Source: Cyanophora paradoxa CCMP329
Taxonomy: Eukaryota > Plantae > Glaucophyta
Assembly (NCBI GenBank): GCA_004431415.1
Contig: QPMI01000093.1
Span: 1 to 64,000, forward strand
Direction of reading: 5' to 3'
Length of the DNA: 64,000 nucleotides
Shown here: in pieces, positions 39,001-63,000 of the stretch
Layout: each line of letters starts with the position of its first letter
Position numbering within the stretch: the first letter of the stretch is position 1
The notes under the pieces: generated by a model
Databases searched by the model: none
What the model saw: only the letters and a program-made list of their open reading frames with translations
Told to the model about the DNA's origin: nothing
Translations under genes and position numbers: made by a program

Positions 39001-42000
39001 CCTCGGAGACGGCGGCGCTGTGTACCCCCTGACGCCGGGATTTCGATGTGACGGAGGGCCCGGCCCGAACGCAGCCTACCACGAATGCCGGCGCTCCTTA
39101 TTCGCTCGATCCCACCAGTCGCAGGGCTCGGCGGCGGGGGCCCTCAGGAAGCCTGCGCATGCGTGTCCGCGGGCCGTACCCTCCGGAAGGGCTCCGCCGG
39201 CCCGTCCGACCGCGCACGGCGGCGGCGCTAGACCCGCAGGGCACGCCCGCAGCGTCGCAAGCCTTACAGACGTGTCCCGCGCCGAGAGTCGCGTCCTCGA
39301 ACGCCTTCCAAACTTGGCTGGACCGCCCTCGAGACGGCGGCGCTGTGTACCCCCTGACGCCGGGATTTCGATGTTGACGGAGGTGCCCGGCCGAACGCAG
39401 CCTACCACGAATGCCGGCGCTCCTTATTCGCTCGATCCACCAGTCCGCAGGGCTCGGCGGCGGGGCCCTCAGGAAGCCTGCGCATGCGTGTCCGCGGGCC
39501 GTACCCTCCGGGAAGGGCTCGCCGGCCCGTCCGACCGCGCACGGCGGCGGCGCTAGACCCGCAGGGCACGCCCGCAGCGTCGCAAGCCTTACAGACGTGT
39601 CCCGCGCCGAGAGTCGCGTCCTCGAACGCCTTCAAACTTGGCTGGACCGCCCTCAAGAGGCGGCGGCGCTGTGTACCCCCTGACGCCGGGATTTCGATGT
39701 GACGGAGGCGCCCGGCCCGAACGCAGCCTACACGAATGCCGGCGCTCCTTATTCGCTCGATCCCACCAGTCCGCAGGCTCGGCGGCGGGGGCCCTCAGGA
39801 AGCCTGCGCATGCGTGTCCGCGGGCCGTACCCTCCGGGAAGGGCTCCGCCGGCCCGTCCGACCGCGCACGGCGGCGGCGCTAGACCCGCAGGGCACGCCC
39901 GCAGCGTCGCAAGCCTTACAGACGTGTCCCCGCGCGAGAGTCGCGTCCTCGAACGCCTTCGAAACTTGGCTGGACGCCCCTCAAGAGGCGGCGGCGCTGT
40001 GTACCCCCTGACGCCGGATTTCGATGTGACGGAGGCGCCCGGCCCGAACGCAGCCTACACGAATGCCGGCGCTCCTTATTCGCTCGATCCCACCAGTCCG
40101 CAGGCTCGGCGGCGGGGGCCCTCAGGAAGCCTGCGCATGCGTGTCCGCGGGCCGTACCCTCCGGGAAGGGCTCCGCCGGCCGTCCGACGCGCACGGCGGC
40201 GGCGCTAGACCCGCAGGGCACGCCCGCAGCGTCGCAAGCCTTACAGACGTGTCCCGCGCCGAGAGTCGCGTCCTCGAACGCCTTCAAACTTGGCTGGACC
40301 GCCCCTCAAGAGGCGGCGGCGCTGTGTACCCCCCTGACGCCGGATTTCGATGTTGACGGAGGTGCCCGGCCCGACGCCGCCTACACGAATGCCGGCGCTC
40401 CTTATTCGCTCGATCCCACCAGTCCGCAGGGCTCGGCGGCGGGGGCCCTCAGGAAGCCTGCGCATGCGTGTCCGCGGGGCCGTACCCTCCGGGAAGGGCT
40501 CCGCCGGCCCGTCCGACCGCGCACGGCGGCGGCGCTAGACCCGCAGGGCACGCCGGCAGCGTCGCAAGCCTTACAGACGTGTCCCCGCGCCGAGAGTCGC
40601 GTCCTCGAACGCCTTCCAAACTTGGCTGGACCGCCCCTCAGAGGCGGCGGCGCTGTGTACCCCCTGACGCCGGGATTTCGATGTGACGGAGGCGCCCGGC
40701 CCGACGCGCCTACACGAATGCCGGCGCTCCTTATTCGCTCGATCCCACCAGTCCGCAGGGCTCGGCGGCGGGGGCCCCTCAGGAAGCCTGCGGATGCGTG
40801 TCCGCGGGGCCGTACCCCTCCGGGAAGGGCTCCGCCGGCCCGTCCGACCGCGCACGGCGGCGGCGCTAGACCCGCAGGGCACGCCCGCAGCGTCGCAAGC
40901 CTTACAGACGTGTCCCCGCGCCGAGAGTCGCGTCCTCGAACGCCTTCCAAATTGGCTGGACCGCCCCTCAAGAGCGGCGGCGCTGTGTACCCCCTGACGC
41001 CGGGATTTCGATGTGACGAGGCGCCCGGCCCGAACGCAGCCTACCACGAATGCCGGCGCTCCTTATTCGCTCGATCCACCAGTCCGCAGGGCTCGCGGCG
41101 GGGCCCTCAGGAAGCCTGCGCATGCGTGTCCGCGGGCGTACCCTCCGGGAAGGGCTCCGCCGGCCCGTCCGACCGCGCACGGCGGCGGCGCTAGACCCGC
41201 AGGGCACGCCCGCAGCGTCGCAAGCCTTACAGACGTGTCCCCGCGCCGAGAGTCGCGTCCTCGAACGCCTTCGAAACTTGGCTGGACCGCCCTCAAGAGG
41301 CGGCGGCGCTGTGTACCCCCTGACGCCGGATTTCGATGTTGACGGAGGCGCCCGGCCCGACGCGCCTACACGAATGCCGGCGCTCCTTATTCGCTCGATC
41401 CCACCAGTCCGCAGGCTCGCGGCGGGGCCCCTCAGGAAGCCTGCGCATGCGTGTCCGCGGGGCCGTACCCCTCCGGAAGGGCTCCGCCGGCCCGTCCGAC
41501 CGCGCACGCGGCGGCGCTAGACCCGCAGGGCACGCCCGCAGCGTCGCAAGCCTTACAGACGTGTCCCCGCGCCGAGAGTCGCGTCCTCGAACGCCTTCAA
41601 ACTTGGCTGGACCGCCCCTCAAGAGGCGGCGGCGCTGTGTACCCCCTGACGCCGGATTTCGATGTGACGGAGGCGCCCGCCCGAACGCAGCCTACCACGA
41701 ATGCCGGCGCTCCTTATTCGCTCGATCCCACCAGTCCGCAGGGCTCGGCGGCGGGGGCCCTCAGAAGCCTGCGCATGCGTGTCGCGGGCCGTACCCCTCC
41801 GGAAGGGCTCCGCCGGCCCGTCCGACCGCGCACGGCGGCGGCGCTAGACCGCAGGGCACGCCCGCAGCGTCGCAAGCCTTACAGACGTGTCCCGCGCCGA
41901 GAGTCGCGTCCTCGAACGCCTTCGAAACTTGGCTGGACCGCCCTCAAGAGGCGGCGGCGCTGTGTACCCCCTGACGCCGGATTTCGATGTTGACGGAGGT

Positions 42001-45000
42001 GCTCCGGCCCGAACGCAGCCTACCACGAATGCCGGCGCTCCTTATTCGCTCGATCCCACCAGTCCGCAGGGCTCGGCGGCGGGGGCCCCTCAGGAAGCCT
42101 GCGCATGCGTGTCCGCGGGCCGTACCCTCCGGAAGGGCTCGCCGGCCCGTCCGACCGCGCACGGCGCGGCGCTAGACCCGCAGGGCACGCCCGCAGCGTC
42201 GCAAGCCTTACAGACGTGTCCCCGCGCCGAGAGTCGCGTCCTCGAACGCCTTCCAAACTTGGCTGGATCGCCCCTCAAGAGGCGGCGGCGCTGTGTACCC
42301 CCCTGACGCCGGGATTTCGATGTTGACGGAGGTGCCCCGGCCCGGACGCCGCCTACACGAATGCCGGCGCTCCTTATTCGCTCGATCCCACCAGTCCGCA
42401 GGGCTCGGCGGCGGGGGCCCCTCAGGAAGCCTGTGCATGCGTGTCCGCGGGGCCGTACCCCTCCGGGAAGGGCTCCGGCCGGCCCGTCCGACCGCGCACG
42501 GCGGCGGCGCTAGACCCGCAGGGCACGCCCGCAGCGTCGCAAGCCTTACAGACGTGTCCCCGCGCCGAGAGTCGCGTCCTCGAACGCCTTCAAACTTGGC
42601 TGGACCGCCCCTCAAGAGGCGGCGGCGCTGTGTACCCCTGACGCCGGATTTCGATGTTGACGGAGGCGCCCCGGCCCGAACGCAGCCTACCACGAATGCC
42701 GGCGCTCCTTATTCGCTCGATCCCACCAGTCCGCAGGGCTCGGCGGCGGGGCCCCTCAGGAAGCCTGCGCATGCGTGTCCGCGGGCCGTACCCTCCGGGA
42801 AGGGCTCCGCCGGCCCGTCCGACCGCGCACGGCGGCGGCGCTAGACCCGCAGGGCACGCCCGCAGCGTCGCAAGCCTTACAGACGTGTCCCCGCGCCGAG
42901 AGTCGCGTCCTCGAACGCCTTCGAAACTTGGCTGGACGCCCCTCAAGAGGCGGCGGCGCTGTGTACCCCCTGACGCCGGGATTTCGATGTTGACGGAGGC
43001 GCCCGGCCCGAACGCAGCCTACCACGAATGCCGGCGCTCCTTATTCGCTCGATCCCACCAGTCCGCAGGGCTCGGCGGCGGGGGCCCCTCAGGAAGCCTG
43101 CGCATGCGTGTCCGCGGGCCGTACCCTCCGGAAGGGCTCCGCCGGCCCGTCCGACCGCGCACGGCGGCGGCGCTAGACCCGCAGGGCACGCCCGCAGCGT
43201 CGCAAGCCTTACAGACGTGTCCCCGCGCCGAGAGTCGCGTCCTCGAACGCCTTCAAACTTGGCTGGACCGCCCCTCAGAGCGGCGGCGCTGTGTACCCCC
43301 TGACGCCGGGATTTCGATGTTGACGGAGGTGCCCGGCCCGGACGCAGCCTACCACGAATGCCGGCGCTCCTTATTCGCTCGATCCCACCAGTCCGCAGGG
43401 CTCGGCGGCGGGGCCCTCAGGAAGCCTGGCATGCGTGTCCGCGGGGCCGTACCCTCCGGAAGGGCTCCGCCGGCCCGTCCGACGCGCACGGCGGCGGCGC
43501 TAGACCCGCAGGGCACGCCCGCAGCGTCGCAAGCCTTACAGACGTGTCCCGCGCCGAGAGTCGCGTCCTCGAACGCCTTCGAAACTTGGCTGGACCGCCC
43601 CTCAAGAGGCGGCGGCGCTGTGTACCCCCTGACGCCGGGATTTCGATGTGACGGAGGCGCCCCGGCCCGAACGCAGCCTACCACGAATGCCGGCGCTCCT
43701 TATTCGCTCGATCCACCAGTCCGCAGGGCTCGCGGCGGGGGCCCCTCAGGAAGCCTGGCATGCGTGTCCGCGGGCCGTACCCTCCGGGAAGGGCTCCGCC
43801 GGCCCGTCCGACCGCGCACGGCGGCGGCGCTAGACCCGCAGGGCACGCCCGCAGCGTCGCAAGCCTTACAGACGTGTCCCGCGCCGAGAGTCGCGTCCTC
43901 GAACGCCTTCAAACTTGGCTGGATCGCCCTCAAGAGGCGGCGGCGCTGTGTACCCCCTGACGCCGGATTTCGATGTTGACGGAGGTGCCCCGGCCCGAAC
44001 GCGCCTACCACGAATGCCGGCGCTCCTTATTCGCTCGATCCCACCAGTCCGCAGGCTCGGCGGCGGGGGCCCCTCAGGAAGCCTGGCATGCGTGTCCGCG
44101 GGCCGTACCCCTCCGGAAGGGCTCCGCCGCCCGTCCGACCGCGCACGCGGCGGCGCTAGACCCGCAGGGCACGCCCGCAGCGTCGCAAGCCTTACAGACG
44201 TGTCCCGCGCCGAGAGTCGCGTCCTCGAACGCCTTCCAAACTTGGCTGGACCGCCCTCAAGAGGCGGCGCGCTGTGTACCCCCCTGACGCCGGGATTTCG
44301 ATGTTGACGGAGTGCCCCGGCCCGACGCGCCTACCACGAATGCCGGCGCTCCTTATTCGCTCGATCCCACCAGTCCGCAGGGCTCGGCGGCGGGGCCCCT
44401 CAGGAAGCCTGCGCATGCGTGTCCGCGGGGCCGTACCCCTCCGGGAAGGGCTCCGCCGGCCCGTCCGACCGCGCACGGCGGCGGCGCTAGACCCGCAGGG
44501 CACGCCCGCAGCGGCGCAAGCCTTACAGACGTGTCCCCGCGCCGAGAGTCGCGTCCTCGAACGCCTTCGAAACTTGGCTGGACCGCCCCTCAAGAGGCGG
44601 CGGCGCTGTGTACCCCCCTGACGCCGGGATTTCGATGTTGACGGAGGCGCCCCGGCCCGAACGCAGCCTACCACGAATGCCGGCGCTCCTTATTCGCTCG
44701 ATCCCACCAGTCCGCAGGGCTCGGCGGCGGGGGCCCCTCAGGAAGCCTGTGCATGCGTGTCCGCGGGGCCGTACCCCTCCGGGAAGGGCTCCGCCGGCCC
44801 GTCCGACCGCGCACGGCGGCGGCGCTAGACCCGCAGGGCACGCCCGCAGCGTCGCAAGCCTTACAGACGTGTCCCCGCGCCGAGAGTCGCGTCCTCGAAC
44901 GCCTTCGAAACTTGGCTGGACCGCCCCTCAAGAGGCGGCGGCGCTGTGTACCCCCCTGACGCCGGGATTTCGATGTTGACGGAGGCGCCCCGGCCCGGAC

Positions 45001-47758
45001 GCCGCCTACCACGAATGCCGGCGCTCCTTATTCGCTCGATCCCACCAGTCCGCAGGGCTCGGCGGCGGGGGCCCCTCAGGAAGCCTGTGCATGCGTGTCC
45101 GCGGGGCCGTACCCCTCCGGGAAGGGCTCCGCCGGCCCGTCCGACCGCGCACGGCGGCGGCGCTAGACCCGCAGGGCACGCCCGCAGCGTCGCAAGCCTT
45201 ACAGACGTGTCCCCGCGCCGAGAGTCGCGTCCTCGAACGCCTTCGAAACTTGGCTGGACCGCCCCTCAAGAGGCGGCGGCGCTGTGTACCCCCCTGACGC
45301 CGGGATTTCGATGTTGACGGAGGCGCCCCGGCCCGACGCAGCCTACCACGAATGCCGGCGCTCCTTATTCGCTCGATCCCACCAGTCCGCAGGCTCGGCG
45401 GCGGGGGCCCCTCAGGAAGCCTGCGCATGCGTGTCCGCGGGGCCGTACCCCTCCGGGAAGGGCTCCGCCGGCCCGTCCGACCGCGCACGCGGCGGCGCTA
45501 GACCCGCAGGGCACGCCCGCAGCGTCGCAAGCCTTACAGACGTGTCCCCGCGCCGAGAGTCGCGTCCTCGAACGCCTTCGAACTTGCTGCTGGACCGCCC
45601 TCAAGAGGCGGCGGCGCTGTGTACCCCCTGACGCCGGGATTTCGATGTGACGGAGGCGCCCCGGCCGAACGCAGCCTACCACGAATGCCGGCGCTCCTTA
45701 TTCGCTCGATCCCACCAGTCCGCAGGGCTCGCGGCGGGGGCCCCTCAGGAAGCCTGTGCATGCGTGTCCGCGGGGCCGTACCCCTCCGGGAAGGGCTCCG
45801 CCGGCCCGTCCGACCGCGCACGGCGGCGGCGCTAGACCCGCAGGGCACGCCCGCAGCGGCGCAAGCCTTACAGACGTGTCCCCGCGCCGAGAGTCGCGTC
45901 CTCGAACGCCTTCGAAACTTGGCTGGACCGCCCCTCAAGAGGCGGCGGCGCTGTGTACCCCCCTGACGCCGGGATTTCGATGTTGACGGAGGCGCCCCGG
46001 CCCGAACGCAGCCTACCACGAATGCCGGCGCTCCTTATTCGCTCGATCCCACCAGTCCGCAGGGCTCGGCGGCGGGGGCCCCTCAGGAAGCCTGCGCATG
46101 CGTGTCCGCGGGGCCGTACCCCTCCGGGAAGGGCTCCGCCGGCCCGTCCGACCGCGCACGGCGGCGGCGCTAGACCCGCAGGGCACGCCCGCAGCGTCGC
46201 AGCTTACAGACGTGTCCCCGCGCGAGATCGCGTCTCGAACGCCTTCAAATTGCTGGACGCCCCTCAGAGGCGCGGCGCTGTTACCCCCTGACGCCGGTTG
46301 ATGTTGCGAGGCCCCGGCCGACGCGCTACCGAATGCGGCTCTTTCGCTCGATCCACAGTCCGCAGTCGCGCGGCCCTCAGAGCTGGCATGCTGTCCGGCA
46401 CCTCGGAGGGCTCGCCGCCCGTCGACGCCACGGGCGGCGCTACCCGCAGGCCGCCGCAGCGTCGCAGCCTTACAGACGTGTCCGCGCCGAGGTCGCGTCT
46501 CGAACGCTTCGAATTGGTGGACCCCCTCGAGGCGCGCGTGGTACCCCTGACGCGGATTCATGTTGCGAGCCCCGGCCCGAACGCAGCCTACCACGATGCC
46601 GGCGCTCTTATTCGCTCGATCCACAGTCCGCAGGCTCGGCGCGGGGGCCCTCAGAAGCCTGCGCATGCGTGTCGCGGGCGTACCCTCCGGAAGGGTCCGC
46701 CGGCCCGTCGCTGCGCACGGCGACGCGCTAGACCCGCAGGGCACGCCCGCAGCGTCGCAAGCCTTACAGACGTGTCCCCGCCCGAGAGTCGGTCTCGAAC
46801 GCCTTCGAACTTGGCTGGACCGCCCTCGGAGGCGCGGCGCTGTGTACCCCCCTGACGCCGGATTTCGATGTTGACGGAGGCCCCGGCCGAACGCAGCCTA
46901 CCCGAATGCTGGCGCTCCTTATTGCTCGATCCACCAGTCCGCAGGCTCGGCGGCGGGGCCCTCAGGAAGCCTGCGCATGCGTGTCCGCGGGGCGTACCCT
47001 CGGGAAGGCTCCGCCGGCCCGTCGACCGCGCACGCGGCGCGCTAGACCCGCAGGGCACGCCCGCGTCGCAAGCCTTACAGACGTGTCCCCGCGCCGAGAG
47101 TCGCGTCCTCGAACGCCTTCCAAACTTGGCTGGACCGCCCCTCAAGAGGCGGCGGCGCTGTGTACCCCCTGACGCCGGGATTTCGATGTTGACGGAGTGC
47201 CCGGCCCAAACGCAGCCTACACGAATGCCGGCGCTCCTTATTCGCTCGATCCATCAGTCCGCAGGGCTCGGCGGCAGGGCCCTCAGGAAGCCTGTGCATG
47301 CATGCGTGTCCGCGGGGCCGTACCCCTCCGGGAAGGGCTCCGCCGGCCCGTCCGACCGCGCACGGCGGCGGCGCTAGACCCGCAGGGCACGCCCGCAGCG
47401 TCGCAAGCCTTACAGACGTGTCCCCGCGCCGAGAGTCGCGTCCTCGAACGCCTTCCAAACTTGGCTGGACCGCCCCTCAAGAGGCGGCGGCGCTGTGTAC
47501 CCCCCTGACGCCGGGGTTTCGATATCGATGTTGACGGAGGCGCCCCGGCCCGAACGCAGCCTACCACGAATGCTGGCGCTCCTTATTCGCTCGATCCCAC
47601 CAGTCCGCAGGGCTCGGCGGCGGGGGCCCCTCAGGAAGCCTGCGCATGCGTGTCCGCGGGGCCGTACGGTACCCCTCCGGGAAGGGCTCCGCCGGCCCGT
47701 CCGGCTGCGCACGGCGGCGGCGCTAGACCCGCAGGGCACGCCCGCAGCGTCGCAAGCC
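1..47758. repeat. Tandem satellite array, 338-bp unit (~73% GC), ~140-145 head-to-tail copies, truncated by the window's left edge; candidate centromeric/pericentromeric satellite
   Basis: The same unit (AACGCAGCCTACCACGAATGCC...TCGCAAGCCTTACAGACGTGTCC...GACGGAGGCGCCCCGGCCCG) recurs every 336-338 bp in clean stretches, e.g. identical ORF starts at 15400/15738 and 21806/22144. The array ends abruptly mid-unit at ...CGTCGCAAGCC (47758). Copy number is estimated from length; a centromeric role is inference. Confidence 0.98.
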
Positions 47759-47886
47759 GCGCGTACTGAAGGTTTTCGTGTACTTGCAAAAAGCATCCTA
47801 TATAGCTATGGCTTAGTGGATGCGATTGCATCCAAACTTCAGCTTCCAAGCTCAAAACCCGAGCGCCCTTCCTATGTTTCTGGCGC

Positions 47887-49685
47887 TCAAAGCCAGCCGC
47901 CCTTGATCTCTGCCCACGGCGTCCCGTCCCAGTACCCCTCCTCGTCCACCTTGTGTGCGCACGCCGGCAGGAGCTCCATCGCCAGCTCCGTGCCCGCCCA
48001 TGGCGCGCCGTCCCAGAATGCCCCTGGTCCCGCGTCCGCCCGGGCTGCCGTGGGGGCCACCCCCCGTGTCTCAGCGGCCTCCTCATCCTCGTCCGCCCAT
48101 GGCGCCCCGTCCCAGCAGCCTGCCGTTGCCTCGGTAACCCCGATGGCCGCTGGCGCCGCCATGGGGAGCGTCGCCGCCTCCTTCTCCACCCAGGGCAAGC
48201 CGTCCCAGCTCGCCTCCTCCGCTCCCTCAAAAGCCCCGGGCGCCCGGGGCCGTGTCGGCGCCGCCCGTGCCGACGCCACGGGGGCGTCCTCCGAGGGCTT
48301 CTGATGCCCCCCTGTCCGCGCTGCCTTGGCCCGGCGTCCCTCCTTCACGGCCACGGGCTCCGAGGCGGCGCGTTTGGCCGCCCGCTGGGTCCGCGCCGCT
48401 GCCGCCACTGCCACCCGCGTCGCCGCCTCGAGCGCCTCTGCCGCCGCCCTCGCCGTAGTCGCCGCCCGCGCTGCCCGCGCTGGCACCGGCGCCCCGACGG
48501 GCCGGGCCTCTCCCTCGACCTCGCCCTTCATGAAGACGGGCGCGCGGGCAGCCTGCGCCTGGCGCTCGCACAGGCGCCGGGTGCGGTCGTCCATGGGGAT
48601 CTTGTCGGGGTTGGTGTAGAGGCAGAGCGTGCCCGCCCGCACGCACCGCCAGAGCTTGGGGAAGAAGCCCCCGCCGTACGAAGTCAGGATGATCTGCGTC
48701 CCGGGTCCGACTGTCATTGGCGGGGCGGGGCGGAGCGTGATGGAAGAAGGGCGGAGACGAATAGAGGTGGGCGGGGCCCGCGCGCCGCGCACCTCTTCGC
48801 CGTCGTAGATGGGCCGGGTGGCGCGCAAGAGGCCCGTCTTCGTGCGGGGGTTCGTGACGAGCCGGGCGTTGGCCTTGCGGCCCGTCCGGTACGCGCAGTT
48901 GGCCCAGCGCCCCTCGTTCGTCGTCTTGCTCCCGTCGATGATGAACAGGCTCGTCACCGCCAGCGCCCACCTGCGCGCGCGGCGGGCGGGTCGCTCGCGG
49001 GGTGGGGCGGCGGGGCGGGGCGGGGCGGGGCGGGGCGAGGCGCGTGCACATCCAGAGCCCCGTGAGGTTGATCCGGTCCAGGTCGTGCGGAGAAGGGTTC
49101 TCGATCGGGTCCCTGGGGGCCCGGCCGGGCGGGGCGGGGCGTCGGACCGGGGCGCGCGGCGCGCGGGGCCGCGGAGGCGTTTGAACAGCGGCGCACCCAT
49201 CGTACTTGGCGACCTCGTCGCCCGGACGAAAGGCGATGGCCTTGGAGCCGCTCGGATCCACCTCGCCGGCCGCGATCCGCCGCTCGCGCTCCGCCGATGG
49301 GAGGGACGCCCAGAGACCTTTGCCACCGATCTCCGAAAGCCGCACCGCCAGCTGGCTTGCGCCGATGAGCCGGGGGCGCGCGCGGGCGGGGCGCGAGCTC
49401 GAGCGGGCGCGGTCGGCTCACGTGGCGCTCCTTCTCCAGGTGCTCAGGGCAGTGCTTGCACACCTTGGTCGTCTTCAAGCACCCCGGAGTCGCGCAGGAC
49501 ACAGCCGGCGTGGTCCGCTCCAGTCGATTGCCGAGCGCCGCGCAGAGCCGAGAACCCCTGGCAAAGACCTCATCGTCGTACGTGCCGGCCCGGCTTGGGA
49601 CCGCCGCCTTGACAGCCTTGTAGGCGATATCGACGGCGCGCCGCGCCACCGGCGGGCGCGGGCCGCGAAGCTTTGGCGGCGCCAT
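47887..49685 (-). CDS. SET-domain lysine methyltransferase-like protein (~488 aa, 5 exons: 49685-49422, 49351-49197, 49112-49050, 48970-48793, 48693-47887)
   Basis: Four GT-AG introns (70, 84, 79 and 99 nt) splice in frame and join the SET motifs in the correct order: LAVRLSEIGGKGLWA, FRPGDEVAKYDG, IIDGSKTTNEGRWANCA...NARL, LRATRPIYDGEE-IILTSYG. The N-terminus has a Cys/His cluster (CATPGCLKTTKVCKHCPEH). The start ATG is in CAAGATGG context. Confidence 0.88.
47910..48210 (-). repeat. Four WDGxPW peptide repeats in the C-terminal tail of the SET protein
   Basis: Translation gives SWDGLPWV, CWDGAPWA, FWDGAPWA and YWDGTPWA, spaced about 28-33 aa apart in an Ala/acidic low-complexity tail. Confidence 0.85.
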
Positions 49686-49745
49686 CTTGGGGGTATACGT
49701 ACGCCGTCGACGCGTACGCCATATAAGCTTCTGACGCCCGTCGCC
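49686..49745. promoter_or_regulatory. Putative 60-bp bidirectional promoter between divergent genes
   Basis: It lies between the SET ATG (49685, minus) and the GCCATGG start (49746, plus). It contains a near-dyad CGTACG-CC-GTCGAC-G-CGTACG (49698-49718), flanked by GTATAC and ATATAAG. Confidence 0.55.
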
Positions 49746-52140
49746 ATGGCCACGCCGGAGGCGCCCATTGCCATGGCGGCGCAGAGCTTCGGAATCGTGT
49801 TTGGAGACCCTTTTGCGATCCTTGGTGTGCCTGCTGACGCGAAGACGGAGCCTGAAGCGTACAAAGAGGCGGGACGCGCGCTAGCTGCGCGGCTCCGCGG
49901 AGAGTCGGTGCGCGCGCGCTACGCCCGTCTTTTCGCCCGGCGCGCCCCCACGCCGACGCCGGCCGCGTGACAGGTCTACGTCGGGGACGGCGACGCGCCT
50001 GGGAGCTCGCCGCTCGCCGCCCCGCAGCTCGAGATGCTCATCTGGCAGGCTGAGACAGGTGTGACATCGCCGCAGCTCCAGGCGCCCGCGCCGACCGCCC
50101 CGCGCCCCGCCCCGCATGCGCAGCCGGCGAGCTCGCGGCGATGTCGGCGGTTCGGGACGCGTTCCTGCACCGGCGACGGGGCGGGTCGATCGTCCTGCAC
50201 CTCGGCGCCGTGATGATCTTCCCGGGCCCCGAGGAGCTGCCGTACTGCGCCCGCTGCGCCGAGCGGGGGCGGGCGCGCGAGGACGTCACGTTTGCCACGC
50301 CGGCAGCTGCAGCGCGGTGCCGCGGCTGCAGCGCTTGGTGGAAGGTGGCCGAGGAGATCCCCGGCCTGCCGAAGAACGTCGCCGAGGCGCTCTCGATCGC
50401 GCCGGCGGGGAAGATGAAGGCTCCGCCGTCGGCGCAGCTACTCGGCGGGATCCCCCTCGGCGGCGACGCCCCGCCGGCCGCGGCGCCCGCCGAGCCGCCG
50501 GCAGAGGTCAAGGAAGCGGAGGAGCAGAAGGAGGAGGGGGACGACGAGGCGGCGAGGGCGGGGGCGGATTCGGAAGCGGCGCAGGAGGCCAACGCGGTGC
50601 TGCACGGGTGCGCGCCCCGCGCCTCCTCCCTCTGCAGCTTCCGCGCCGCGCGCCGTCGTCGCGTGTCCGAGTCCGGGCCTTGGAGCCGCGCAGGTTCGAT
50701 CTGGCGAAGGTCACAAAAAAGGCCTGCAAGGAGATCGGGGCAGTCCTGCGGAGCCCGACCGTCCGGCCGATGTCCGCGCTTCTCAAAGGCATCGGCGTGC
50801 CGTTGAAGCGGGACGCGAGAAAGGTGGTTCTCCTCGCGATTCTCCAGGAGATCGCCCGCAGGATCGGCCTCGACACGAGCCAGAGGTGCGTCCGCCGGCC
50901 TCGTCGCGCCCCACAGGGATCCGATCCCGCCCCCGCCGCGCAGCCAGGCCGCCGCCACCGTCGTGATCAAGAAAGAGTGCGCCGCGCCCGGCCCCGGCCC
51001 CACTCGACCCCGCGCCCCACTCCCGCTCTCGCTCTTGCCCTATCGTGCCGACGATCAGCGTGCAGGAAGGTTGTGTCAGAGGACGAGGCGGGGGGCGAGG
51101 CGGATGCGGACGGCATCACCCCAGCCCCCAAGCGGGCGCGGTGCTCGACGCCGACACAGGAGCCCAAGATCGAGCAGGCCGTCTCGTCGCCGAGCCGGTC
51201 CAGTGAGCCGTCCTCTGAGCTACCCGCCCGGTGCGCCGCCGGTTTTGTTCCCCCGCCCGACCGGCTTCGTCCTGTGACGCCCCACACGCGGCGGCGGACG
51301 CAGTGGCCGCAACGGTGGCAGCGGCAAGCCGGCGGGGGTCCCGGCGCGAGCGACGCGCACCTCGGGGCCTGCCTCGTCGAGGTAGGACCCTAACCGCCAG
51401 CCCTCGCCCGCCCGCCCGCCCGCCCGCGCGCCTCTGACGTGGGCGCAGCGAGGTCCCGGAGGGCCCCAAGACGAGCACCGGCACGCGCGGGGCCAGGTGA
51501 CTCGCGCCGCCTCGCTGGACTGGACCGGCTGACCGCCTGCCGACCCCCTCTCGTTTGTGCAGGGCCGCGGGGCGGGAGGCGGGCGAGGGCGAGGGAGACG
51601 CCTCTACCTCTTCCTCCGCAGCAGCCGGGGGCGGCCCGAAATCTGCAGCGTCCCGGCCGCCGGCACCTCCACCGCCGGCGCCGGCACCCCGGGCTCCTCG
51701 CCCCCACGCGCCCACCGCCGCCCACGCCGCCCCGGCCCCGGCTTCGGCCCCGGCCCGGCCCCCGCCCCTGCCCCTGCCCCTGCCCCTGCCTCGGGCCCCG
51801 TCGACAACGGCGAGCCGGTGATGAGCTCGGACGGCAAGGTGGTGCCCGCCAGCCTCGTGAGCCGCATCTCTGTGCGCCGCGCCCCCGGCCCCCGCCTGCC
51901 CCTCCCCCCGCCCCGACCTCCGCGCCCGGCCAGGCCGCAAAGCGGTGGTCCAGGGAGGATTTCGGTGCCTTTACGTACGAGGAGATCTTCGAGTACTGCC
52001 GTCATAGCAAGCCGTGCGCGCCGTCCGCCCCGCCCCGGCTAACAGCACCGCCCGCCCCGACGCCGCGCCTGTCGGAGCCACAGGACCCCGGCGGCGTGAC
52101 GGCGCGGGAGGGTCAGCAAGCGGCCGTCTCCGCCGTCTGG
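49746..52140 (+). CDS. Multi-exon protein of unknown function with a CxxC-x21-CxxC motif, acidic linker and SAP/HeH-like helix-extension-helix; 3' end unresolved
   Basis: Frame-compatible GT-AG exons: 49746-49907, 49974-50058, 50124-50607, 50694-50885, 50944-50976, 51066 onward, plus further exons to about 52.1 kb. Peptides include DPFAILGVPADA, YCARC...RCRGC, PTVRPMSALLKGIGVPLKRDARKVVLLAIL, an NLS-like PAPKRAR, and KRWSREDFGAFTYEEIFEYC. The domain calls are by eye. Confidence 0.7.
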
Positions 52141-53561
52141 AACCCCCCTCCCCCTCCCCCTCCCCCCCGCCCCTTCCCGCCTCCTCCTCCCCCCCCCCTT
52201 CCCCTCCGGTTCTCCCGCGCGTCTCCACGCTTGCGGCCCCGCGAACGTGCTCCATACACGTGCCGTGCGGGGTTGGGGGCTAGCGCCGCCCCTTCTGATC
52301 ACGGCGCCCCGGCGAGCGCAATTTCGGGCGCCGGCGAAATTTAAACGCGACTTATAATTAGGTTACAGCATCATACAGGGTAAATTGCTCAAGGATAAGA
52401 GACAAAATCGATCACGATAAACGCTACAGGGCCGGAGGTCGGGGCGGAGATCAGAATCTAGCTATAGAGGCGCCGGCGGACGTACGTATACGTCGCCACG
52501 GTCGGGGCGGAGATCGGAAGCTTTAAGCAGACATGTACCGTAGTCGCGGCATCGATATCAGAGTGCTGCAGCTGGCGCGCACGCCGGCCAACGCCGCAAG
52601 CTGAGTGCTGCCGGCGCCCCGCGGCGCGGCCATGTTGCGGCTGCGCGCGCGCATGCATGCGTACGCGTGCTAGCGCGCTGCGAGCTGAGGCAGCAGCTCC
52701 CACGCTGACTCAGTGAGGATCGCGGCACGCGCCGCGGGACGAACGCCGCTGGCGCGGGGTAGCCCGTCTTTTTTGACGTACCCCATTTGACCAAAGAGTG
52801 TACCCTCGCGCGTCCGACCAGTCCGGACCGGACCGTCCCTGATCCTGCAGCCCGCCGCTATAGGACTTCACAGGTGCGCCGCTCGCGCTCTTTGATCTAT
52901 GAAAAGCTGACCATGGGCTCGGCCCGTGCGCGACTCCCGCAGTCATGGCAAAATGGTCGTCGCGTTGCACGCCTGGCGGGCCGGGCGTGTTTGCTGGCCT
53001 TTGTGGCTCTCGCTCCACGCCCGATCGGCCCGCGCTCGCTCGGCGAGTTGCCGCGTGGCCGCCGGCGCGTCCCGCAAACGCACCGAGCTTCCGCCCGCCC
53101 TGCGCTGGCAAACGCTCTCCGTAAGATCGCAGGGTGCTCAGATGGCCTCAGGGGCGCCCTCCGGCCGGCAGAAGCCGCGCGGCAGCGACCCGGCGTCGTT
53201 TGAACGCATCTCGCGCGGCGCCGGAGCGGCGAAGACGCTTTTTTTTTAAACAAAGCGGGAAGACGAGCCCGATCGATCGGATGAGGTCTCAACGTCTGCC
53301 GGTACGCCCGCGGGCCGCTAGGGCGGATTGTTTGATCTCCCTCACCCGCCCCACAGCCCTCCGTCGACCTCCGTCGATCCAACGCTCGCAAGAAGGGGCG
53401 ATTGCTTGGGGGACTTGAGAGGACTTCTCCGGCCGCCCCTCCCCTTCCCGCCTCTCCTCGGTGGGGCCGCCCCGGGGCCCGCCCTCAGCACCCTCACGCC
53501 TTCTTTTCTACCCCCGAATTCATCCCCCCCCCCCCCCCCCCCCCCGCCGCTCCCCGGTGAG

Positions 53562-54297
53562 TCGCTTCGCGCGGGGGCGTCAAGAGGCCGCACAGGTGCG
53601 CCCAGAAGCGCGAGCGCGTCTCCGGCCCCTCTTCCCCCGCACCGCCTTACCCCCGTTGGCCCGCAGGTACCGCCGAGGTGCGCCGCCCCGATCCCCCCGC
53701 CGGGCCCCGCCGGCTCCGCGGCTGAGCGCTGAGGACGGTCGCCCCCATCCTCGTCCTCCTCGCCTCCCTCGTTCCTGACCCGGTCCCGCCCTCAGATCCG
53801 CAAGTACCAGAAGACCCTCAATCCCCTCATCGCCTACACGCCCTTCGATCGCCCTTCGGGCGCCCGCGCGGGGCGGTGCGGGGGGCGATGCCGACGGGGG
53901 CGCGCGGGGCGCAGGTCAAGGAGCTGGCCCAGGACGAGTTCAAGCGCCGGCGCGAGGCCGGCTTCACCTGCGAGGACCTGCGCTGGCAGAAGGAGGCAGA
54001 AGGAGGCGATCGAGGCGCTGCGCGAGGCGGCCGAGATGCACCTGATTTGAGGGGGCCAACCTCGCGGCGATCCACCGCATCCGCACGACCATCCAACCCA
54101 AGGCACGCCCCACCACCTCGCGCTCGCCCTCGCACGCGCCGGCGGCTGACGCCGCCCGCCGCTTACTAGTTACACACGCAGGATATTCAGGTGCCCCCGC
54201 CCCCTCTGCCCGCCGGCGGGCTCGATTCCCGTCCTCCCCCGACCGGCGGGATGCGCGATCGCAGCTCCGCCGCAAGATTCGCGGCGAGGACGAGTGA
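53562..54297 (+). pseudogene. Divergent histone H3 variant (CenH3/CENP-A-like signatures), intron-rich, disrupted in this copy
   Basis: H3 blocks appear collinearly, separated by introns: GGVKRPHR (to 53595) | YRRG (53667-53677) | TVA (53735-53743) | IRKYQKTLNPLIAYTPF(D/G)R (from 53796) | VKELAQDEFKRRREAGFTCEDLRWQKEA-IEALREAAEMHL..FEGANLAAIHRIRTTIQPK (53915-54102) | DIQ (54182-54190) | LRRKIRGEDE* (54265-54297). Lesions: LRE and two splice donors are missing, there are 11-bp and 10-bp tandem duplications, and an ~8-bp deletion near 54045. The N-terminal tail was not identified. Confidence 0.88.
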
Positions 54298-54687
54298 GGC
54301 GGGCTCGGCTACGGCGCGCGGCGAGGGGGCCGCGAGGCCCAGGGCCGGCTCGGCGGGTCCCCCGACGCCCTCGGGTCCTGCAGGCACTGAACGTTTCTGT
54401 CGAATCCGCCGAGCCCTCTGCGGTCGTCTCTGCCGAGCCGAGCGCTGGGGCGCGCATGCACGCACAAGAGGGCCGCGCCTCCTGAACCCAGCCCGCGGCG
54501 ATGAGACCGAGGGCGCACGAGTTGGCTGAGCTTGGCTCGTACATTCGTCGGCAGCACTCGAGCTCGGTGCACGTGGGCCTGCGAAAAGGAAAAGCAGCCG
54601 GTCCGGATCCCGAGCTCTCTCGTCGTCGTCGTCTCTAGATCTAGATCCGGCCTGAGCTGCGGGCGGCGGGTTCAAACGTCCCAACAG

Positions 54688-57291
54688 TCGCGTGAGACCT
54701 GGGCACCTTTCGATTCGGCACCAGCAAAAAGCGTCACCGCGGCCGTTTTCGGCGAGCTCACAGCAGAGTATGGGGGGGGTACCCATGGTAGCATTAGTTT
54801 GTATGGGACTGCGGCCCCCCCCCCTGACCATTCTGTGCAGTAACCATCAGCGCGCCGGGCGACGCGCTAGCACGCTCGTCGTCCTTAGCTAGGCCTTCCG
54901 GGCAGTGTGAAAGCAGTCCGGCCGACGGGGGCGCTCTGGCTCGGGAGATCGACTTGTAGCTAGTGCGGGTCGGCCGGGCCATCGGGGAGGCGCCCAGCGA
55001 CCAGCTCACCGCATCATTAGTGAGCCTGGCATGCCGCAGACGAGCGGGCGCGCCACGCCCCGCCGCCTCTGGTCCGCTGGACTCTCCGAAAAGGTAACCG
55101 CCGCGCACTGCGAACGAAGGATCGGCGGAAGCTGACCACCGGCGTCGCAGCGCCGACGCAGGACGTTACGAACGTAATGTGCATCTGATGAGAGTCTGCT
55201 GGTGCGCTGGGCTGGTCGCCGCGCGACCGGCCTGACCGACGCCCCCGCCAGGAGGCCGTGCACCAGCCGCGCATCTCGCCGGCGGGGCGCAGGTGCAGCC
55301 TCGCCTAGCATATGCGACTTAGCTAAGCTAACAGTGCTGATCAATGCTCGCAGCGCGCGCCGGGCGCCGCTCCTGGGCCGCCCGCTCTTGGTGGTGGTCG
55401 CCGCCCCTACGGAGTCGCCGTGGTGCGGGCGCGACCTTTTGCGTCCTTTCTTCAGCTTTGTTTTGATGTATACTACATGCAGGCAACCTGTGCGCACGGT
55501 GGGGCTCTTCGGGGCGGGCGTTTCTGGCGGAGAACGCCACCTGGTCCCCCTTCTGGGCCAGATCCCGCTGCTCCCCGTCGCTCTCCGCGTCTTCCTTGGA
55601 TAGCGCATCGTCTAGATGGTTATGTACAATGAATCTACGCGTTTCCCCGCTGCCGCGCCCGCGCCCCCGTCCCAGGATTTGGGTGTCACCACTGCACTGC
55701 TCCAGCAGAGCGCCCTGTGCGCCCAGCACGTCCTAGGGCGGCCGAGATGGATGGAAACATAGTATATTACATAGAAGCACATTCGGGAACGATCCAACGC
55801 GTCCGGGAAGCGCGGGCAAGGCCTAGGGGTCCGAGCCTGACCCCAAGTCCTTGCCACCACCACCGCCAGCCACCGAACGCAGCACGGCGCCCTGCACAGC
55901 GTGCGCGTGGTGCGAAACATAGTTAGTCTTGCGCAGGAACGCAGCTGGCGCGTGGGCTCTGCCGGGATGCGCACCGGAAGCGACCAGCACTGCGGCAGTG
56001 GCGGGCACCAAGCCAGAACGCGCGGCGGAGCCGCCCTGTGCTCCCGGCGTAAGCTGTTGACACAGCTGATGCCGCCTATGTGCTGCGGGCGACCGGCGAG
56101 GTCACAGGTGACCGGCGGCGGGCGAGCGGGCGGGCGCAGCGGGCGGACGGGACGGACTTCACTCCCGAGAGCGGACGATGGCGCCGATCGTCATGAAGCA
56201 TGTTCAACATCTAAGAACACTGTTGAAGCACGTTAGGCCCACGCAGCAAGAGCGCCCGGGTCGCCGCACCTTCGAGAGCACGCCGCTCGGCGGGCGAGCG
56301 GGGCGGGCGGGCTGTAGCACCGCCAGTGCTGTTTGTATGACCTATGCGTTGCTCCTGATACGCTGGCTGGTAGCCCGGCCGCCGCCGCCGCCATCCGACC
56401 TCGCTGGGCGCGCGACAAAGTCCGAAGTCCGACCCAGACGGACAGGGCTGAGAGCGGACGACCAACTAGAGCTCGACGCGCTACATGGAAAAGCGATGCT
56501 CGCCGGAAGCGCTGATGCAGGGGTTTCACGGCGGACGCTGCCGAAGTTGTTTTTTTCAGCCCACCGGGGGTGCCACTTTTCCCATACAAACTAATGCTAC
56601 CATGGGTACCCCCCCATACTCTGCTGTGGCTCGAGCTGCAAGACCGCGACGGAACTCGGTTCGCGGCAGCAACAGCCCCGACGGCTGCGGGCGCACCGCA
56701 AAAGCCCCCTGGCTCGTCTAGGGCTCTGGGCACGGCGGAGACGAGGTGCGCAAAGCGGACCGCGCGCCACGCGACCGATATCGAAAGCTAGCGCTCGCCG
56801 CCGCTTGCTCGAGCCCTGCGGCCGCCACCGCCGACACCTCGCCTTTGAATCCGCAGGTAGGGCACGCGTCCGAAGATCATACCGGGCGGCGGGCCCGGAA
56901 GCTCGCGCGTCGACGTCGGCTTGCTTGCGCGCGCGCACGGATCCGGACGGAGCTGGCCAAGGCCACCAAGGCGGCGAGAAAGGCGGCCACCAGGCTCCGC
57001 GGCATCGCCTTGCAGGCCTCGCAGAAGCGAAAGCGCGAGAACCGGAGGCCTCGCAGGCCCTGGCCGGGGAATTCGAACCGGAGCCGTCCGCTGCCTGGGC
57101 AGGCCCCGGCGGTCAGCCGGGCCGGGAAGAGGCGGAGGCAGCCCCGCGGCGTGTTCTCCCGCGCACTGCGGCAGGGGAGAGCGTCGGCAGCAAGAGCTGC
57201 CGCAGGAGCCGCCGGGGGCCGCCGCCGCGCGGCAGACGGTTCGCCGCCGCAGCGGCGGCGCGGCGCGCCGGCGCCGAGGCTTCCCCGTTAA
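54688..57291 (+). pseudogene. Possible low-complexity gene whose exon is interrupted by the TIR element
   Basis: Removing the element and one TSD restores a continuous frame, SRETWAPFDSAPAKSVTAAVFGEL-ELQDRDGTRFAAATAPT...GTAET. It is bounded by a CAG acceptor (54685-54687) and a GTGCGC donor (56746), followed by a Lys/Arg-rich frame. No homology was recognised. Confidence 0.3.
54759..56628. mobile_element. Non-autonomous TIR DNA transposon (1870 bp), CACAG...CTGTG termini, 3-bp TSD GCT; EnSpm/CACTA-Chapaev (CMC)-like
   Basis: TIRs at 54759-54808 (CACAGCAGAGTATG8TACCCATGGTAGCATTAGTTTGTATGGGA) and 56580-56628 are identical apart from G8 versus C7. GCT flanks both ends directly. No transposase ORF is recognisable inside. 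Confidence 0.9.
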
Positions 57292-58240: not shown

Positions 58241-58369
58241 GTCGGCGTCTCGGAGTCTCAGCTGCAGAGCCCCCGCGCTGCGGGAGCGCGTCTGTTAGCC
58301 CAGACGCGTGCACGTCTCTCACGTCAACCATCTGGATCGTAATCTGTGGCTCTAGACGAGCTTGAGCGT

Positions 58370-59921
58370 ATGCCGCGATCAGAGCAGAACCGGGCGACAG
58401 CCAACTTCGACCTTGCCCCGCTGCAGGCGGAGTGGCAGCGGCTGTTTCCGACTAGCGCTGTGCCATTGACAGTGCTCACGCTTGTTACTGTTGCGACCGT
58501 CGCCCAGCTCTATCCGCCAACCTTCAGTTATGCTAGCATCATTCCTCCGACTGCTTGGACCTTCTACACGCAGCCGGCCTTCGATGCGCTACAGCAGCTG
58601 ATCACTGAGCGTGTGAGCGCTCTTACCAGCGAGCCAGCGCATTCGGTCGCGCGCTGGGGTCGCGGTTTTCTTGTGATCTTCAGTAGTACTGCGCATTGTG
58701 AGCGGTTCCTGACATCGGTCGGTGCAGCTGGCCTCCAGTTGGCCGTTCCAGCCCTTGGCATTCTTGCGGCCGCTTGGATTGTCGGCCGTGAGCCGACGCC
58801 GCCGGCGGGCGGTCTGCCTCCTGACCCTGGCCAGCCGCCGCTTCAGCGCCCGCAGGGCCAGGATCACTGGATCTGGCTTGAGAAGTTTCAGCATCGGCCC
58901 GATGAGGACCCTATCCGCCATTGGCTGGCGCAGCGCGGCCTGAAAGTCCGGCACATTCATTATCAGCAGCGGGGCATGCCAGCCGGGATTATGAAGATCT
59001 ATCTCTCTGAGCTGCCCCCGCTCGATGTGCAAGTTGCTCTTCCTAATACGGTTACCTTTGGCGACGGGCTTGAGCTTCGTGTGGCGGCCAGCTGGCGGGA
59101 CTGCCGCCTGTATGGTTGCGGAGGCCGGCCTCACCTTCCTCATCCCCTAGCTGACCATCACCCCTCTCTCTCTGAATTTCATACCTCCAAACTCTCCGCC
59201 GCGTCCACTCCGTCCTCAGCGTCCCGGCCTCAGAAGGCGGCCCGCAAGGAGACAGCCGCAGCTGGGCCCAGCGCAGCTGCAGATAAGCCTGCAGCTGATC
59301 AGTTTACTTATTCTTACCCAGCAACTGGCCCGCGTTGGACAGAGGCAACTGGTCCTATGGGCCTTGAGCTCTCCGCCCCGCCAGGGCCTGACGGACAGCT
59401 CTCCAAGCCTGCCCACCGCATTGTCTTCCCCCTTCAGGCCATTCTCCAAGCCCGGGCCGGGAAGGCCTCTGCCGCACCTCCCGCCCCCTCTGGCTCCGCT
59501 GGCGGCCCTTCGGACATGGCTATAGACCCGGTGAGCTCTTTCTTTTTGTTCAGATCTAATAGGGGTGTACAGTTGGTGGCCCCCCCGGCTGCGCTGCAGT
59601 TGGGGTTGTGGACTGCCAAAGCTGCACTGCAGCTGCGGCATGATGCCAAGGCTGCGCTGCAGCTGCGGCACCTTGAACTTGCAATTGTTCTGATCTGGGC
59701 TTTAAAACTGGATTACTGTTTAAATACGATGCATAGACATCTCATAAATTGGCACTCTTATTACTTTTTTCAACTCGCCCTCACCTTGTTTCTGAGCGCA
59801 GCCCGCTGGCCTGCCCACGGAGATGACGAACATGCAGATCGCTGCCGCCGGCCGTACAATTCCAACACGCGTTCGGGGTGCCGGTTCTGGCACTGGTGCC
59901 GGTTCTGGCACTGGCAAGTAG
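58370..59921 (+). CDS. LINE ORF1 (RRM-like region, degenerate Cys/His knuckle, Pro/Ala-rich tail); probable intron 59531-59801
   Basis: A long ORF lies directly upstream of ORF2. It includes GFLVIFSSTAHCERFL, WIWLEKF...PIRHWL...LPNTVTFG and CRLYGCGGRPH. Splicing GTGAG(59531)..GCAG(59801) gives DMAIDP|PAGLPTEM...GSGTGK*. The unspliced frame stays open to 59995. Confidence 0.75.
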
Positions 59922-60002
59922 GGTCGTCTCGTATTTTGCCCTTCTTCAATTTAAGCTTGTACATAGTTTTCTCTGGATTCTTTAAACCACCGTGATCATA
60001 CT

Positions 60003-63000
60003 ATGGCCATCAATATTGTCTCCCTGAACGTTGCAGGGAAATTAGTAGGAGACACAAGCTTCTGTGCTTCACTTGGTATGCACCACGTTGATTATCTCCT
60101 TAAGTGTGCTCGTGAACAGTCTCGCAAATCCATAGTTTGTTTACAGGAAACTCACGTATCGAGTAAAGTAGACGCTGCTTTTCTGAAAGGCAAGTGGGGG
60201 GCTACCCTTCGTACTGGGCTTTCAATCCAGAAGTTGCCAGTCAAGGTGTAGCTACTCTCTTCCCTAATAAGCGATTTAGCATTACCTCGCTAGCTCCTGC
60301 ACAGAGTTCCCGGCTGCAGCTGTTCCTGTTGCGCTCTGGAACTGTAAATATTTACCTGTGCAACATTTACGCACCTGTTCAGGATGCTGAACGGTTAGGC
60401 TTCTACGAGACATTGTGTCATACTCTGGAGTCGGTCGTTCCTGTGGGGTCCCATTTAATCTTATGTGGTGATTTTAACTTTCACCTTTTGCCTTCTGACG
60501 CGAACAGTACTTCGGGGCGGGTGTCGCCCCCTGCATCCTTTGAAGCGGTTTGCTCGCAATATCAACTCCAGGATGTTGCATCGCTTTGTACGGATGAGCG
60601 CCGGTCTAATCGATTTAAAACGTTTTATCGGACTAATGCCCAGGCAGCCTCGGGGGCCGTCGAATCTCGTCTAGATTATTTCTTTGTCTCTCAATCCCTA
60701 CTCGCATGGAACCCAGTGCTCGTCCCATGGATGAAATACACTTCCAGACATCTTGATAGGCCTCTTTCTGATCACATTGGAATTCAACTCACGCTGTCCC
60801 CTCCAGTTCATCAGCGTGGGCCGGGTCGCTGGAAGATGCGATGGGACCTTTATGGGAAGAACCCAGCGTATCTCGCTGAAATTCGGAAGGTTTTTCAGAT
60901 GTGGCGTGCTGAGTGGCCTTCGCCTGCATCCGATTCTATTCTTCGCTTCGAAGCTCTTAAACGGTATCTACAGACTGCTCTCTCTGCGTGGGAGTCGACT
61001 GAGCGGCGCAAGAATAAGTCGGCTTACTGGTCTGCCATGAAACGTCTCGAACGTCTCATCACCGCCTATTCGCAGGGCGAGATCTTACGGGACAGTTTCT
61101 TGAGTGGCCGCTCTGCTCTTTATAGAGAGCTGCGGGAGCGCATGCCTCAAGTGTGTAGGGCTGCCGTTCAAGCTGACTCGCTATTCTCAAGTCAGAACGA
61201 GGCCACATCGAGGCGGGAGTTTTTCACTCATTATTTCGGAACTGCTGAGCAGGAGACCGGATGTGAGAATAAACTCCGGCCGGCCAACACCCCGGATCCC
61301 TCTTATGCTTCTGATAATCCCTTTGTGCTTATGACGTTGTCGGCAGCTCATTTCGCTGATTTATACGATGGTCAGCAAGCTCAAAGTGTGGTGGCGGCGC
61401 ATCGTGATGAACGGGCTGAATGTGCGTCACTGTATGCGCCTTATAAACTCATTCCGCGGGAGGCCGTGGATCTCGATACCCCACTGGCCGCCTATGAATT
61501 GTTGCAATCGTTTAAGGATATATCTGGGCTTAGAAAATCCCCTGGACTTGATGGTTTAGTACCTGAATTTTATAGTACTTTCTGGGGCGACATTGGTCCA
61601 GATTTTATGGAATACCTTAAGGCTATGCATAATCGGAAGGCGGCCCCTGGCTCGCTACGAGATATCCTCATTGTCCCAATTCCGAAACCTGGTACGGATG
61701 CGACTTTGGTCACTAACCGTCGGCCTATCGCTCTATCGAATGTAGAGGAGCGAGCAGTCGAGCGGGCATTATCTAACCGCTTGACCCCTATCATGCCCCG
61801 CTTAATATCAAAATATCAGTCGGGTTTTATCACCAAACGTTCTGCGGTGCATCAATTTATGCTCGTATATTTATTGATGTATTATGAGGGGATAATCCCG
61901 ATCTCGAGGAACTTTGTTTGGGGTTCCTTGATTTCTCCAAAGCCTATGATCGGGTGAATTGGGAGTTTCTTTTCTGGACCTTGAATCAATATGGATTTGG
62001 GTCATACTTTACTGACTGGGTCCGTCTTTTGTATTCTGATCTGTCGGGATGATCCATATTAATGGCTGGACAACGCCTCGGTTTCCCATCCGGTGCGGAG
62101 TCCGGCAGGGTGGTCCTCTATCGCCATATCTATATAATTTGTGTGCGCATCTATTAATCATGTTAATCGATACTGAACCCCGTATACGCGGGGTGCAAAT
62201 TTCTGGGCGGTCCATATGCAAGGTCCTCCAGTTTGCTGATGATACTGTTCCCCTTATTGCCTCCTTTGCGGAATTCCCCATTTGGGACGCTCTCATTAAG
62301 AAATTTCAACGGTTAACAGGGGCGAAAATTAATCTCGAAAAATCGCATATACTACCCATGCACTCAAATTTATCTCTTCCACCTGATTGTCCTTTTGAGC
62401 GTATGAAGGTTGATCCTTCTGAGATTTCCGCAGATGCCAAGATCGCCAAATATCTCGGGTTCCCTCTGGAGCTAGTGCATGACCGGTTTTGGAATAAAAA
62501 GACTGCTGCTCTCGTTCTGCGCGCACAGTCAGTTAACCGGAATCGGATGCCTCTACGCTCTGGTGTTTTACTTGCGTGGGCTGCTATTGTGGGATCACTA
62601 CATTATCCGCTGTATATTTTAGAACCGGGAGGTGATCGTTATAAAGCTTGGAGTAATTTAATCCGCAACTTTTCGGGTGTACGCGGCTCCGTATCTACAT
62701 ATGTTACGGCGCTTCCGTTTAAAGACGGTGGATTAAATTGCCCAGATATTGTTACGTTTTCGCTGGCTTTAAAATCTAAATGGCTTGCCTTCCTTAACGA
62801 CCCGGCCTGTTCAGCTCCTTGGAAGGAATATATTCAATACCAAATAGACCGTCAGTTGGCTCCATTCTCTTATGCTAATGTCATTTTGGGGCTTGATGTG
62901 TCTGCCATCTTGCCAAGATTGCATTTGCCACCGCTTTGGCAGATGCTGTTTGAGGCGTGGCGAGATCGTCAAGCCGTTGCATCTCCTACAACCGTGCATC

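Follow-up and report, generated by a model that had tools for sequence, protein, structure and literature searches.

The first 64,000 nucleotides (nt) of contig QPMI01000093.1 of the glaucophyte Cyanophora paradoxa CCMP329 (positions 1-64,000, forward strand; this whole stretch is referred to as the window) contain a SET-domain gene, a divergently oriented partner gene and a broken histone H3 variant, all located next to a long satellite array. The reading that we favour, though at somewhat less than an even chance, is that a large virus-derived or transposon-type element, by now immobile and decaying, carried the three genes as chromatin-control (anti-silencing) cargo, and that they are what survives of it. 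This reading is based on the occurrence of SET relatives in Ty3 chromoviruses and virus-like contigs, on the grouping of the Cyanophora SET proteins in one clade and on the existence of a Cyanophora-only, multi-copy H3 family. It is also based on the tight packing of the locus (60 nt between the start codons of the SET and the partner gene, 129 nt between the SET stop codon and the array edge), on the R8K/K9R tail of an intact sister of the H3 gene, and on a metagenome contig where 1 kb separates a SET gene from an H3 variant.

The C. paradoxa assembly consists of 712 contigs obtained by PacBio RSII sequencing, and the genome is probably haploid (PMC6704402). Published models were used for the SET gene and for the intact H3 sister, and the partner gene and the H3 copy of the window were searched exon by exon. 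Copy number was estimated by comparing the depth of short-read contigs derived from the window's own copy with that of contigs derived from sisters, depth being a rough guide to copy number. The DNA runs X1 and X9 served for depth and contigs, the RNA-type runs were X15 and X17, and sisters were detected at a threshold of at least 85% identity.

The SET gene (Table 1) proved to be intact, as claimed by the first-pass annotation of this DNA: it has 488 codons in five exons bordered by GT-AG introns and agrees exon by exon with the published EukProt model tig00000382_g24547. Spliced contigs were found in both RNA-type runs, in which the 219 nt between two pieces match the summed length of exons 2 and 3 with one additional base. 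The encoded protein consists of a Cys/His pre-SET motif, a SET core at approximately residues 88-230 and a disordered C-terminus. The Pfam match was weak (E 0.06); Foldseek recovered the SET fold with an E value of 8e-7, the predicted model being confident over the domain, and a profile of the family matched MLL1 with an E value of 4.6e-14. In structure comparison EZH2, SETD8 and PRDM9 were tied at a Z of about 11, and the matches, tied among H3K4, H3K27 and H4K20 enzymes, do not point to one substrate. The cofactor-binding and catalytic motifs (GxG, the first Tyr, RxxNH and E..Y; here G98/G100, Y138, R182/N185 and E220/Y226) are present family-wide. In nearly all members another residue, Cys in the window SET, takes the place of the NH-motif His, and the window SET has no post-SET cysteines (a compact SET). 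Its C-terminal tail (47887-48210) contains, within the disordered region, five W-D-G-x-P-W-like repeats that most paralogs lack and that are possibly linear interaction motifs.

Six paralogs of the SET protein, encoded on six other Cyanophora contigs, are 32-42% identical to it over the domain, and in a quick tree the seven proteins formed one clade (SH-aLRT 92). The next relatives are domains within Ty3 chromovirus polyproteins and small genes on virus-like contigs, the latter lying beside Dam, capsid-like or DVNP genes. The best predicted-structure matches in a viral library include giant-virus SETs; a single-protein viral scan gave no match. By these affinities, the window SET is of the mobile-element type and outside the host KMT families. 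On one of the virus-like contigs (L003:6580-10570) a relative of the window SET occurs together with a DVNP gene, an EsV-1-7 repeat gene and a faint match to a capsid protein, and a near-identical SET is present in the genome of Klebsormidium nitens.

The start codon of the SET gene faces that of the partner gene across a short interval presumed to be a bidirectional promoter. A spliced RNA contig backs partner exons 1-6 (four of them directly, the other two through the lengths in between), which shows, together with the SET contigs described above, that both genes are expressed and spliced. Nine partner exons could be joined in phase. Within the C/G repeats at 51715-51856 the short-read contigs break; a possible frameshift, which may be an assembly error, is located there, and more candidate exons lie beyond. 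Two of the features previously ascribed to this gene, its head-to-head arrangement with SET and a CxxC..CxxC motif, were found again, but the SAP/HeH-like motif was not detected: there was no match to SAP, HeH or LEM in Pfam (E<=5), NCBIfam or PDB/PHROG (E<=10, E<=2), searches in which such short domains are easily missed, and the SAP/HeH reading is a resemblance seen by eye only. Pfam, NCBIfam, PHROG, PDB and Atlas gave nothing firm on the identity of the protein; the nearest Atlas clusters, small Zn-ribbon-like proteins (0.89-0.91), are to be taken as a lead only. A single-sequence fold (pLDDT 42) was no more informative. The J-domain considered for exon 1 was a look-alike by eye that searching did not confirm, and no paralog of the partner gene was found downstream in the window.

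The third gene, the H3 variant, is real and truly broken. Compared with its intact sister tig00020801_g13931 (146 amino acids, on another contig), an intact copy elsewhere of the kind that the first-pass annotation had named as support, the window H3 is identical in 95 of the 102 residues compared. It carries five lesions: residues 1-32 (the tail) are missing, the end of a micro-exon together with its donor is lost near 53745, approximately 11 nt are lost at the donor near 53854-53857, 10 nt are duplicated near 53985-54004, and a loss of 8 nt near 54045 leads to a stop. In both DNA runs, zero-difference own-copy contigs contain the lesions near 53745 and 53854, which argues that the copy is indeed broken and led us to reject the possibility that all the breaks are read errors. 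Read support covers these two lesions; the missing tail, the duplicated 10 nt and the loss of 8 nt are taken from the assembly. The duplication is absent from the short-read contigs compared there, all of which may derive from sisters. An RNA contig bears the private letters of the window H3 at 54065, 54080 and 54279, and the introns are uncovered in the coverage rows; judging from this coverage, the 3' exons of the broken copy seem to be transcribed and spliced. Coverage also indicates what seems to be a new TAG acceptor in this copy (54167-54190), which precedes the ancestral CAG by 12 nt; near it, one H3 sister lacks 7 nt of the intron.

The depth of the H3 sisters at approximately 92% identity was about 8-12 times that of the own copy, and one of these sisters is intact. 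Three more diverged subfamilies exist in Cyanophora, so that the family comprises four subfamilies with many dispersed copies. The Cyanophora variants formed a clade of their own (SH-aLRT 93-95) in trees that contained no verified CenH3. Giant-virus H3s fall outside this clade, and a viral origin of the variant was not supported. One sister family, with a depth of about two copies, has 36 other letters at 53828-53831, so that variation among the sisters extends to the alpha-N/alpha-1 region.

The first-pass annotation had called the variant CenH3-like, a description that holds for the fold but not for the tail of the family, which is H3-like. The features by which CenH3s are recognised include a long loop 1, replacement of Q68, F84 and T107, a divergent, unalignable tail and grouping with other CenH3s (PMC4359364). 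The variant has an H3-family fold, 62% identical to that of canonical H3, in which loop 1 spans 16 residues instead of 6 (10 additional amino acids, also present in the window copy) and Q68, F84 and T107 are replaced by D, W and A, the same residues being encoded by the window exons. The tail of the intact sister, however, is 83% identical to canonical H3: it keeps K4, K14, K23, K27 and K36, and carries the changes R8K/K9R, T3M, K18R and K37R. When the fold of the window's subfamily was searched against PDB, the best match was canonical H3 and CENP-A was absent from the top 60; with the fold of a sister subfamily, Schizosaccharomyces pombe Cnp1 came first (73.6 versus 68.6 bits). The top Atlas cluster, auto-named CSE4, has 32,102 members and resembles a general H3 cluster. 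Unrelated metagenome histones with H3-type tails likewise show F84W and long loops. The variant is not classed as a CenH3, and the case illustrates that the loop 1 and Q/F/T criteria can mislabel H3-tailed variants as CenH3.

If the three genes are indeed the cargo of an element, they could have worked together as follows. The SET gene and its Zn-ribbon partner would be co-transcribed from the 60-nt promoter, the partner would act as a DNA or chromatin adaptor, and the SET enzyme would methylate a histone lysine, thereby keeping the chromatin of the element permissive. The H3 variant would be supplied by intact sisters, with K4, K27 and K36 kept and Arg at position 9; owing to this Arg, nucleosomes containing the variant should not be able to carry H3K9 methylation. 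Writer, adaptor and K9-less histone would together make up an anti-silencing kit, and the array would be either internal DNA of the element or its landing place.

Several observations weigh against the cargo proposal. Neither the SET nor the partner gene has a sister at or above the identity threshold: both are single-copy while H3 is multi-copy, with the boundary near 52550. Among the annotated genes, no contig carries both a SET paralog and an H3 variant, many H3 copies being unannotated. Neither termini nor a target duplication were found around the cluster in the window, in which the array obscures the left flank, and 47758-64000 contains, apart from a LINE, no gene for an integrase, recombinase, transposase, polymerase or capsid protein. 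The K9 change was observed in the intact sister only, the window copy having lost its tail, and the methylation of a histone lysine by SET and the anti-silencing effect are predictions. As regards the earlier suggestion of mobile-element cargo, the SET relatives in chromoviruses and virus-like contigs and the multi-copy H3 family speak for it. As for the metagenome contig mentioned above, an AT-rich one (L050), it is the single case among about 100 H3 loci examined in which a SET gene lies 1 kb from a divergent H3, which does not amount to a demonstrated enrichment. On that contig (L050:607-2797), an unrelated and probably viral one, the divergent H3 gene is intronless.

Copy number bears on the main rival of the cargo reading, according to which the locus is a patchwork that built up where genes are few and repeats many: a SET and partner pair that is old, single-copy and perhaps domesticated and works alone, an H3 cassette of a younger repeat family that was inserted separately and is now a dead passenger, and the satellite, CACTA and LINE sequences. 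The SET and partner genes are covered by zero-difference contigs at a depth of 47-53 (X1) and 79-83 (X9), and unrelated single-copy contigs had depths of 51-57 and 80-105, respectively. The interval 52130-52530 is still single-copy, and the multi-copy H3 segment begins sharply near 52550-52570. Since SET and partner are single-copy and the similarity to the H3 sisters starts near 52570, the recent sisters, approximately 92% identical, must lack this SET and partner. This step is what the patchwork predicts, as is the low identity of the closest SET paralogs given above, and other mobile DNA is nested directly alongside. The patchwork does not readily account for three chromatin-type genes within 6.5 kb with no host gene between them, and we regard it as possible but rather doubtful. 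The trio is, in any case, not a recently multiplying unit, and the suggestion that the three genes spread together was not supported: SET and partner are single-copy as against about 8-12 H3 sisters, and the annotated SET paralogs and H3 variants are on separate contigs. It had been stated beforehand that single-copy genes would speak against a satellite-linked module; this is the case for SET and partner, but not for H3.

The array next to the SET gene is GC-rich and nearly homogeneous, with 0.25% substitutions and 1.75% gaps relative to the reference unit; the gaps, mostly losses, look like long-read consensus errors. Its size, 47.8 kb, is a lower bound because the array is already present at position 1 of the window. 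The array is young or actively homogenised. The possibility of a coding or structured-RNA satellite was rejected: all six frames of the unit carry stops, no tRNA was found in the whole window, and the last few units had no Rfam match. There was also no similarity between the array and the remainder of the window. Own-copy DNA contigs containing the 3' end of the SET gene reach, by length, to 47730 and 47729 in the two runs, 29-30 nt inside the array. A k=31 graph has to break at this point, and the junction is therefore probably genuine, which makes the misassembly envisaged by the first-pass annotation unlikely. Judged likewise by their lengths, the SET RNA contigs stop 24-43 nt short of the array.

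None of the present results shows a centromere at this site. The locus might be a selfish centromere or segregation module, an element equipped with its own satellite, a CenH3-like mark, a DNA binder and a writer, which recruits the kinetochore or drives segregation as an episome or B-chromosome-like entity. The size and homogeneity of the array, the three CenH3-type substitutions, the 10-residue extension of loop 1, the 62% fold identity to canonical H3 and the preference of a sister subfamily for Cnp1 fit this view. They are offset by the 83% canonical tail, by the preference of the window's own subfamily for canonical H3, its 60 best matches including no CENP-A, by the occurrence of F84W and long loops in unrelated H3-tailed histones, and by the broken state of the local H3. 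Moreover, all 14 listed DNA runs, which may be of one strain, contain the locus, and in two of them it has ordinary single-copy depth. Taking these points into account, we consider such a module unlikely. The same low likelihood applies to the wider conjecture that Cyanophora harbours a family of large elements with a centromere-like kit (macrosatellite, chimera of H3 tail and CenH3 fold, methyltransferase, adaptor), which exist as episomes or hijack the kinetochore and of which this locus is a decayed copy. Least probable of all is a host centromere, with the array as an ordinary centromeric satellite, the H3 family as a host CenH3, or a chimera of CenH3 and H3, that has been amplified, and the neighbouring genes as pericentromeric: the CenH3-type features of the fold, the large homogeneous array and the failure of a limited search to identify a separate conventional CenH3 of Cyanophora are outweighed by the H3-like tail, the many dispersed copies in four subfamilies and a SET of the mobile-element type, outside the host KMT families.

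On the other side of the cluster, the window contains further mobile DNA. The only pair of terminal inverted repeats (TIRs) in the window belongs to a nested CACTA-type element, whose internal open reading frames (ORFs) have no Pfam match. On the minus strand of 54300-57290, stretches that resemble exons, with GT-AG borders and pairs of Cys, flank this element on both sides and point to a fourth gene that would converge with H3 and have been interrupted by the CACTA insertion; the putative gene matched nothing in Pfam and does not resemble the partner gene. An AT-rich spacer with many short palindromes (57290-58340), possibly a promoter or the end of an element, precedes the LINE. The LINE has a lower GC content (approximately 49%), and its ORF1-like frame of 549 amino acids is without Pfam match. 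The features are summarized in Table 1.

Table 1. Location of the features in the 64,000-nt window
Feature	Position	Strand	Remarks
Tandem array, GC-rich (73%), 338-bp unit	1..47758	.	144.6 copies; nearly homogeneous; continues past the left edge of the window
Junction of array and unique DNA	47729..47790	.	array ends inside a unit; inferred from lengths of short-read contigs
SET-domain gene, intact	47887..49685	-	488 amino acids, five exons; single-copy, spliced, expressed
SET exons	49685-49422, 49351-49197, 49112-49050, 48970-48793, 48693-47887	-	introns GT-AG
Interval between the SET and partner start codons	49686..49745	.	60 nt, with 7-bp inverted repeat; bidirectional promoter presumed
Partner gene	49746..52152	+	no family identified by library matches; single-copy, spliced, expressed
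Partner exons	49746-49907, 49974-50058, 50124-50607 (CxxC..CxxC), 50694-50885 (HeH-like by eye), 50944-50976, 51066-51230, 51304-51381, 51449-51496, 51563-	+	nine in phase
Segment shared with H3 sisters (upstream/5' region)	52570..53330	+	left edge of the multi-copy segment
Histone H3 variant, broken	53573..54297	+	from exon-by-exon comparison with the intact sister
CACTA-type DNA transposon, nested, non-autonomous	54759..56628	.	1870 nt; TIRs of ~50 nt starting CACAG; target duplication GCT
L1/Tx1-type LINE, frameshifted	58346..64000	+	ORF1-like frame, endonuclease and reverse transcriptase

Mobile elements with SET enzymes and viruses with histones are already known. A literature search, incomplete in coverage, revealed no description of an amplified, intron-rich H3 family that joins a K9-less H3 tail to a CenH3-like fold, or of a lineage-specific, mobile-type SET clade in Cyanophora. 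If the kit is real, an early-branching alga offers a testable case of selfish DNA that sets the state of its own chromatin. The window locus is a partly decayed example, and the intact H3 sister is the better object of study.

Compared with CenH3/CENP-A (PMC4359364), the Cyanophora variant shares the H3 fold, the extended loop 1, the replacement of Q68, F84 and T107 and a fold identity to canonical H3 of 62%, but differs by its near-canonical tail and its dispersed, multi-copy family. With the VANC proteins of Arabidopsis VANDAL transposons, which are element-encoded, counter silencing and co-evolve with tandem repeats of the element (PMC12859917), the likeness lies in the logic of anti-silencing and implies no sequence kinship; VANC acts on DNA methylation, whereas the proposed kit would act via a histone writer and a histone variant.

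The closest parallels to the SET gene are the SETs of mobile elements and viruses, among which its nearest relatives are found and with which it shares the compact domain without post-SET cysteines. Chlorovirus vSET, for example, is a small viral SET protein that represses host genes through H3K27. The window SET differs from this group in being a stand-alone, intron-rich gene for a protein of 488 amino acids with pre-SET Cys/His residues, a long disordered tail and Cys in place of the NH His; in Ty3 chromoviruses the SET is fused within the polyprotein, whereas here it is a separate gene. Giant-virus H3 genes are intronless, almost all keep Q68, F84 and the short loop, and fall outside the Cyanophora clade. 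They nevertheless provide examples of selfish DNA carrying its own H3 with a near-canonical tail (L005-L007, L089-L109), and in one case, L050, the H3 gene adjoins a SET gene.

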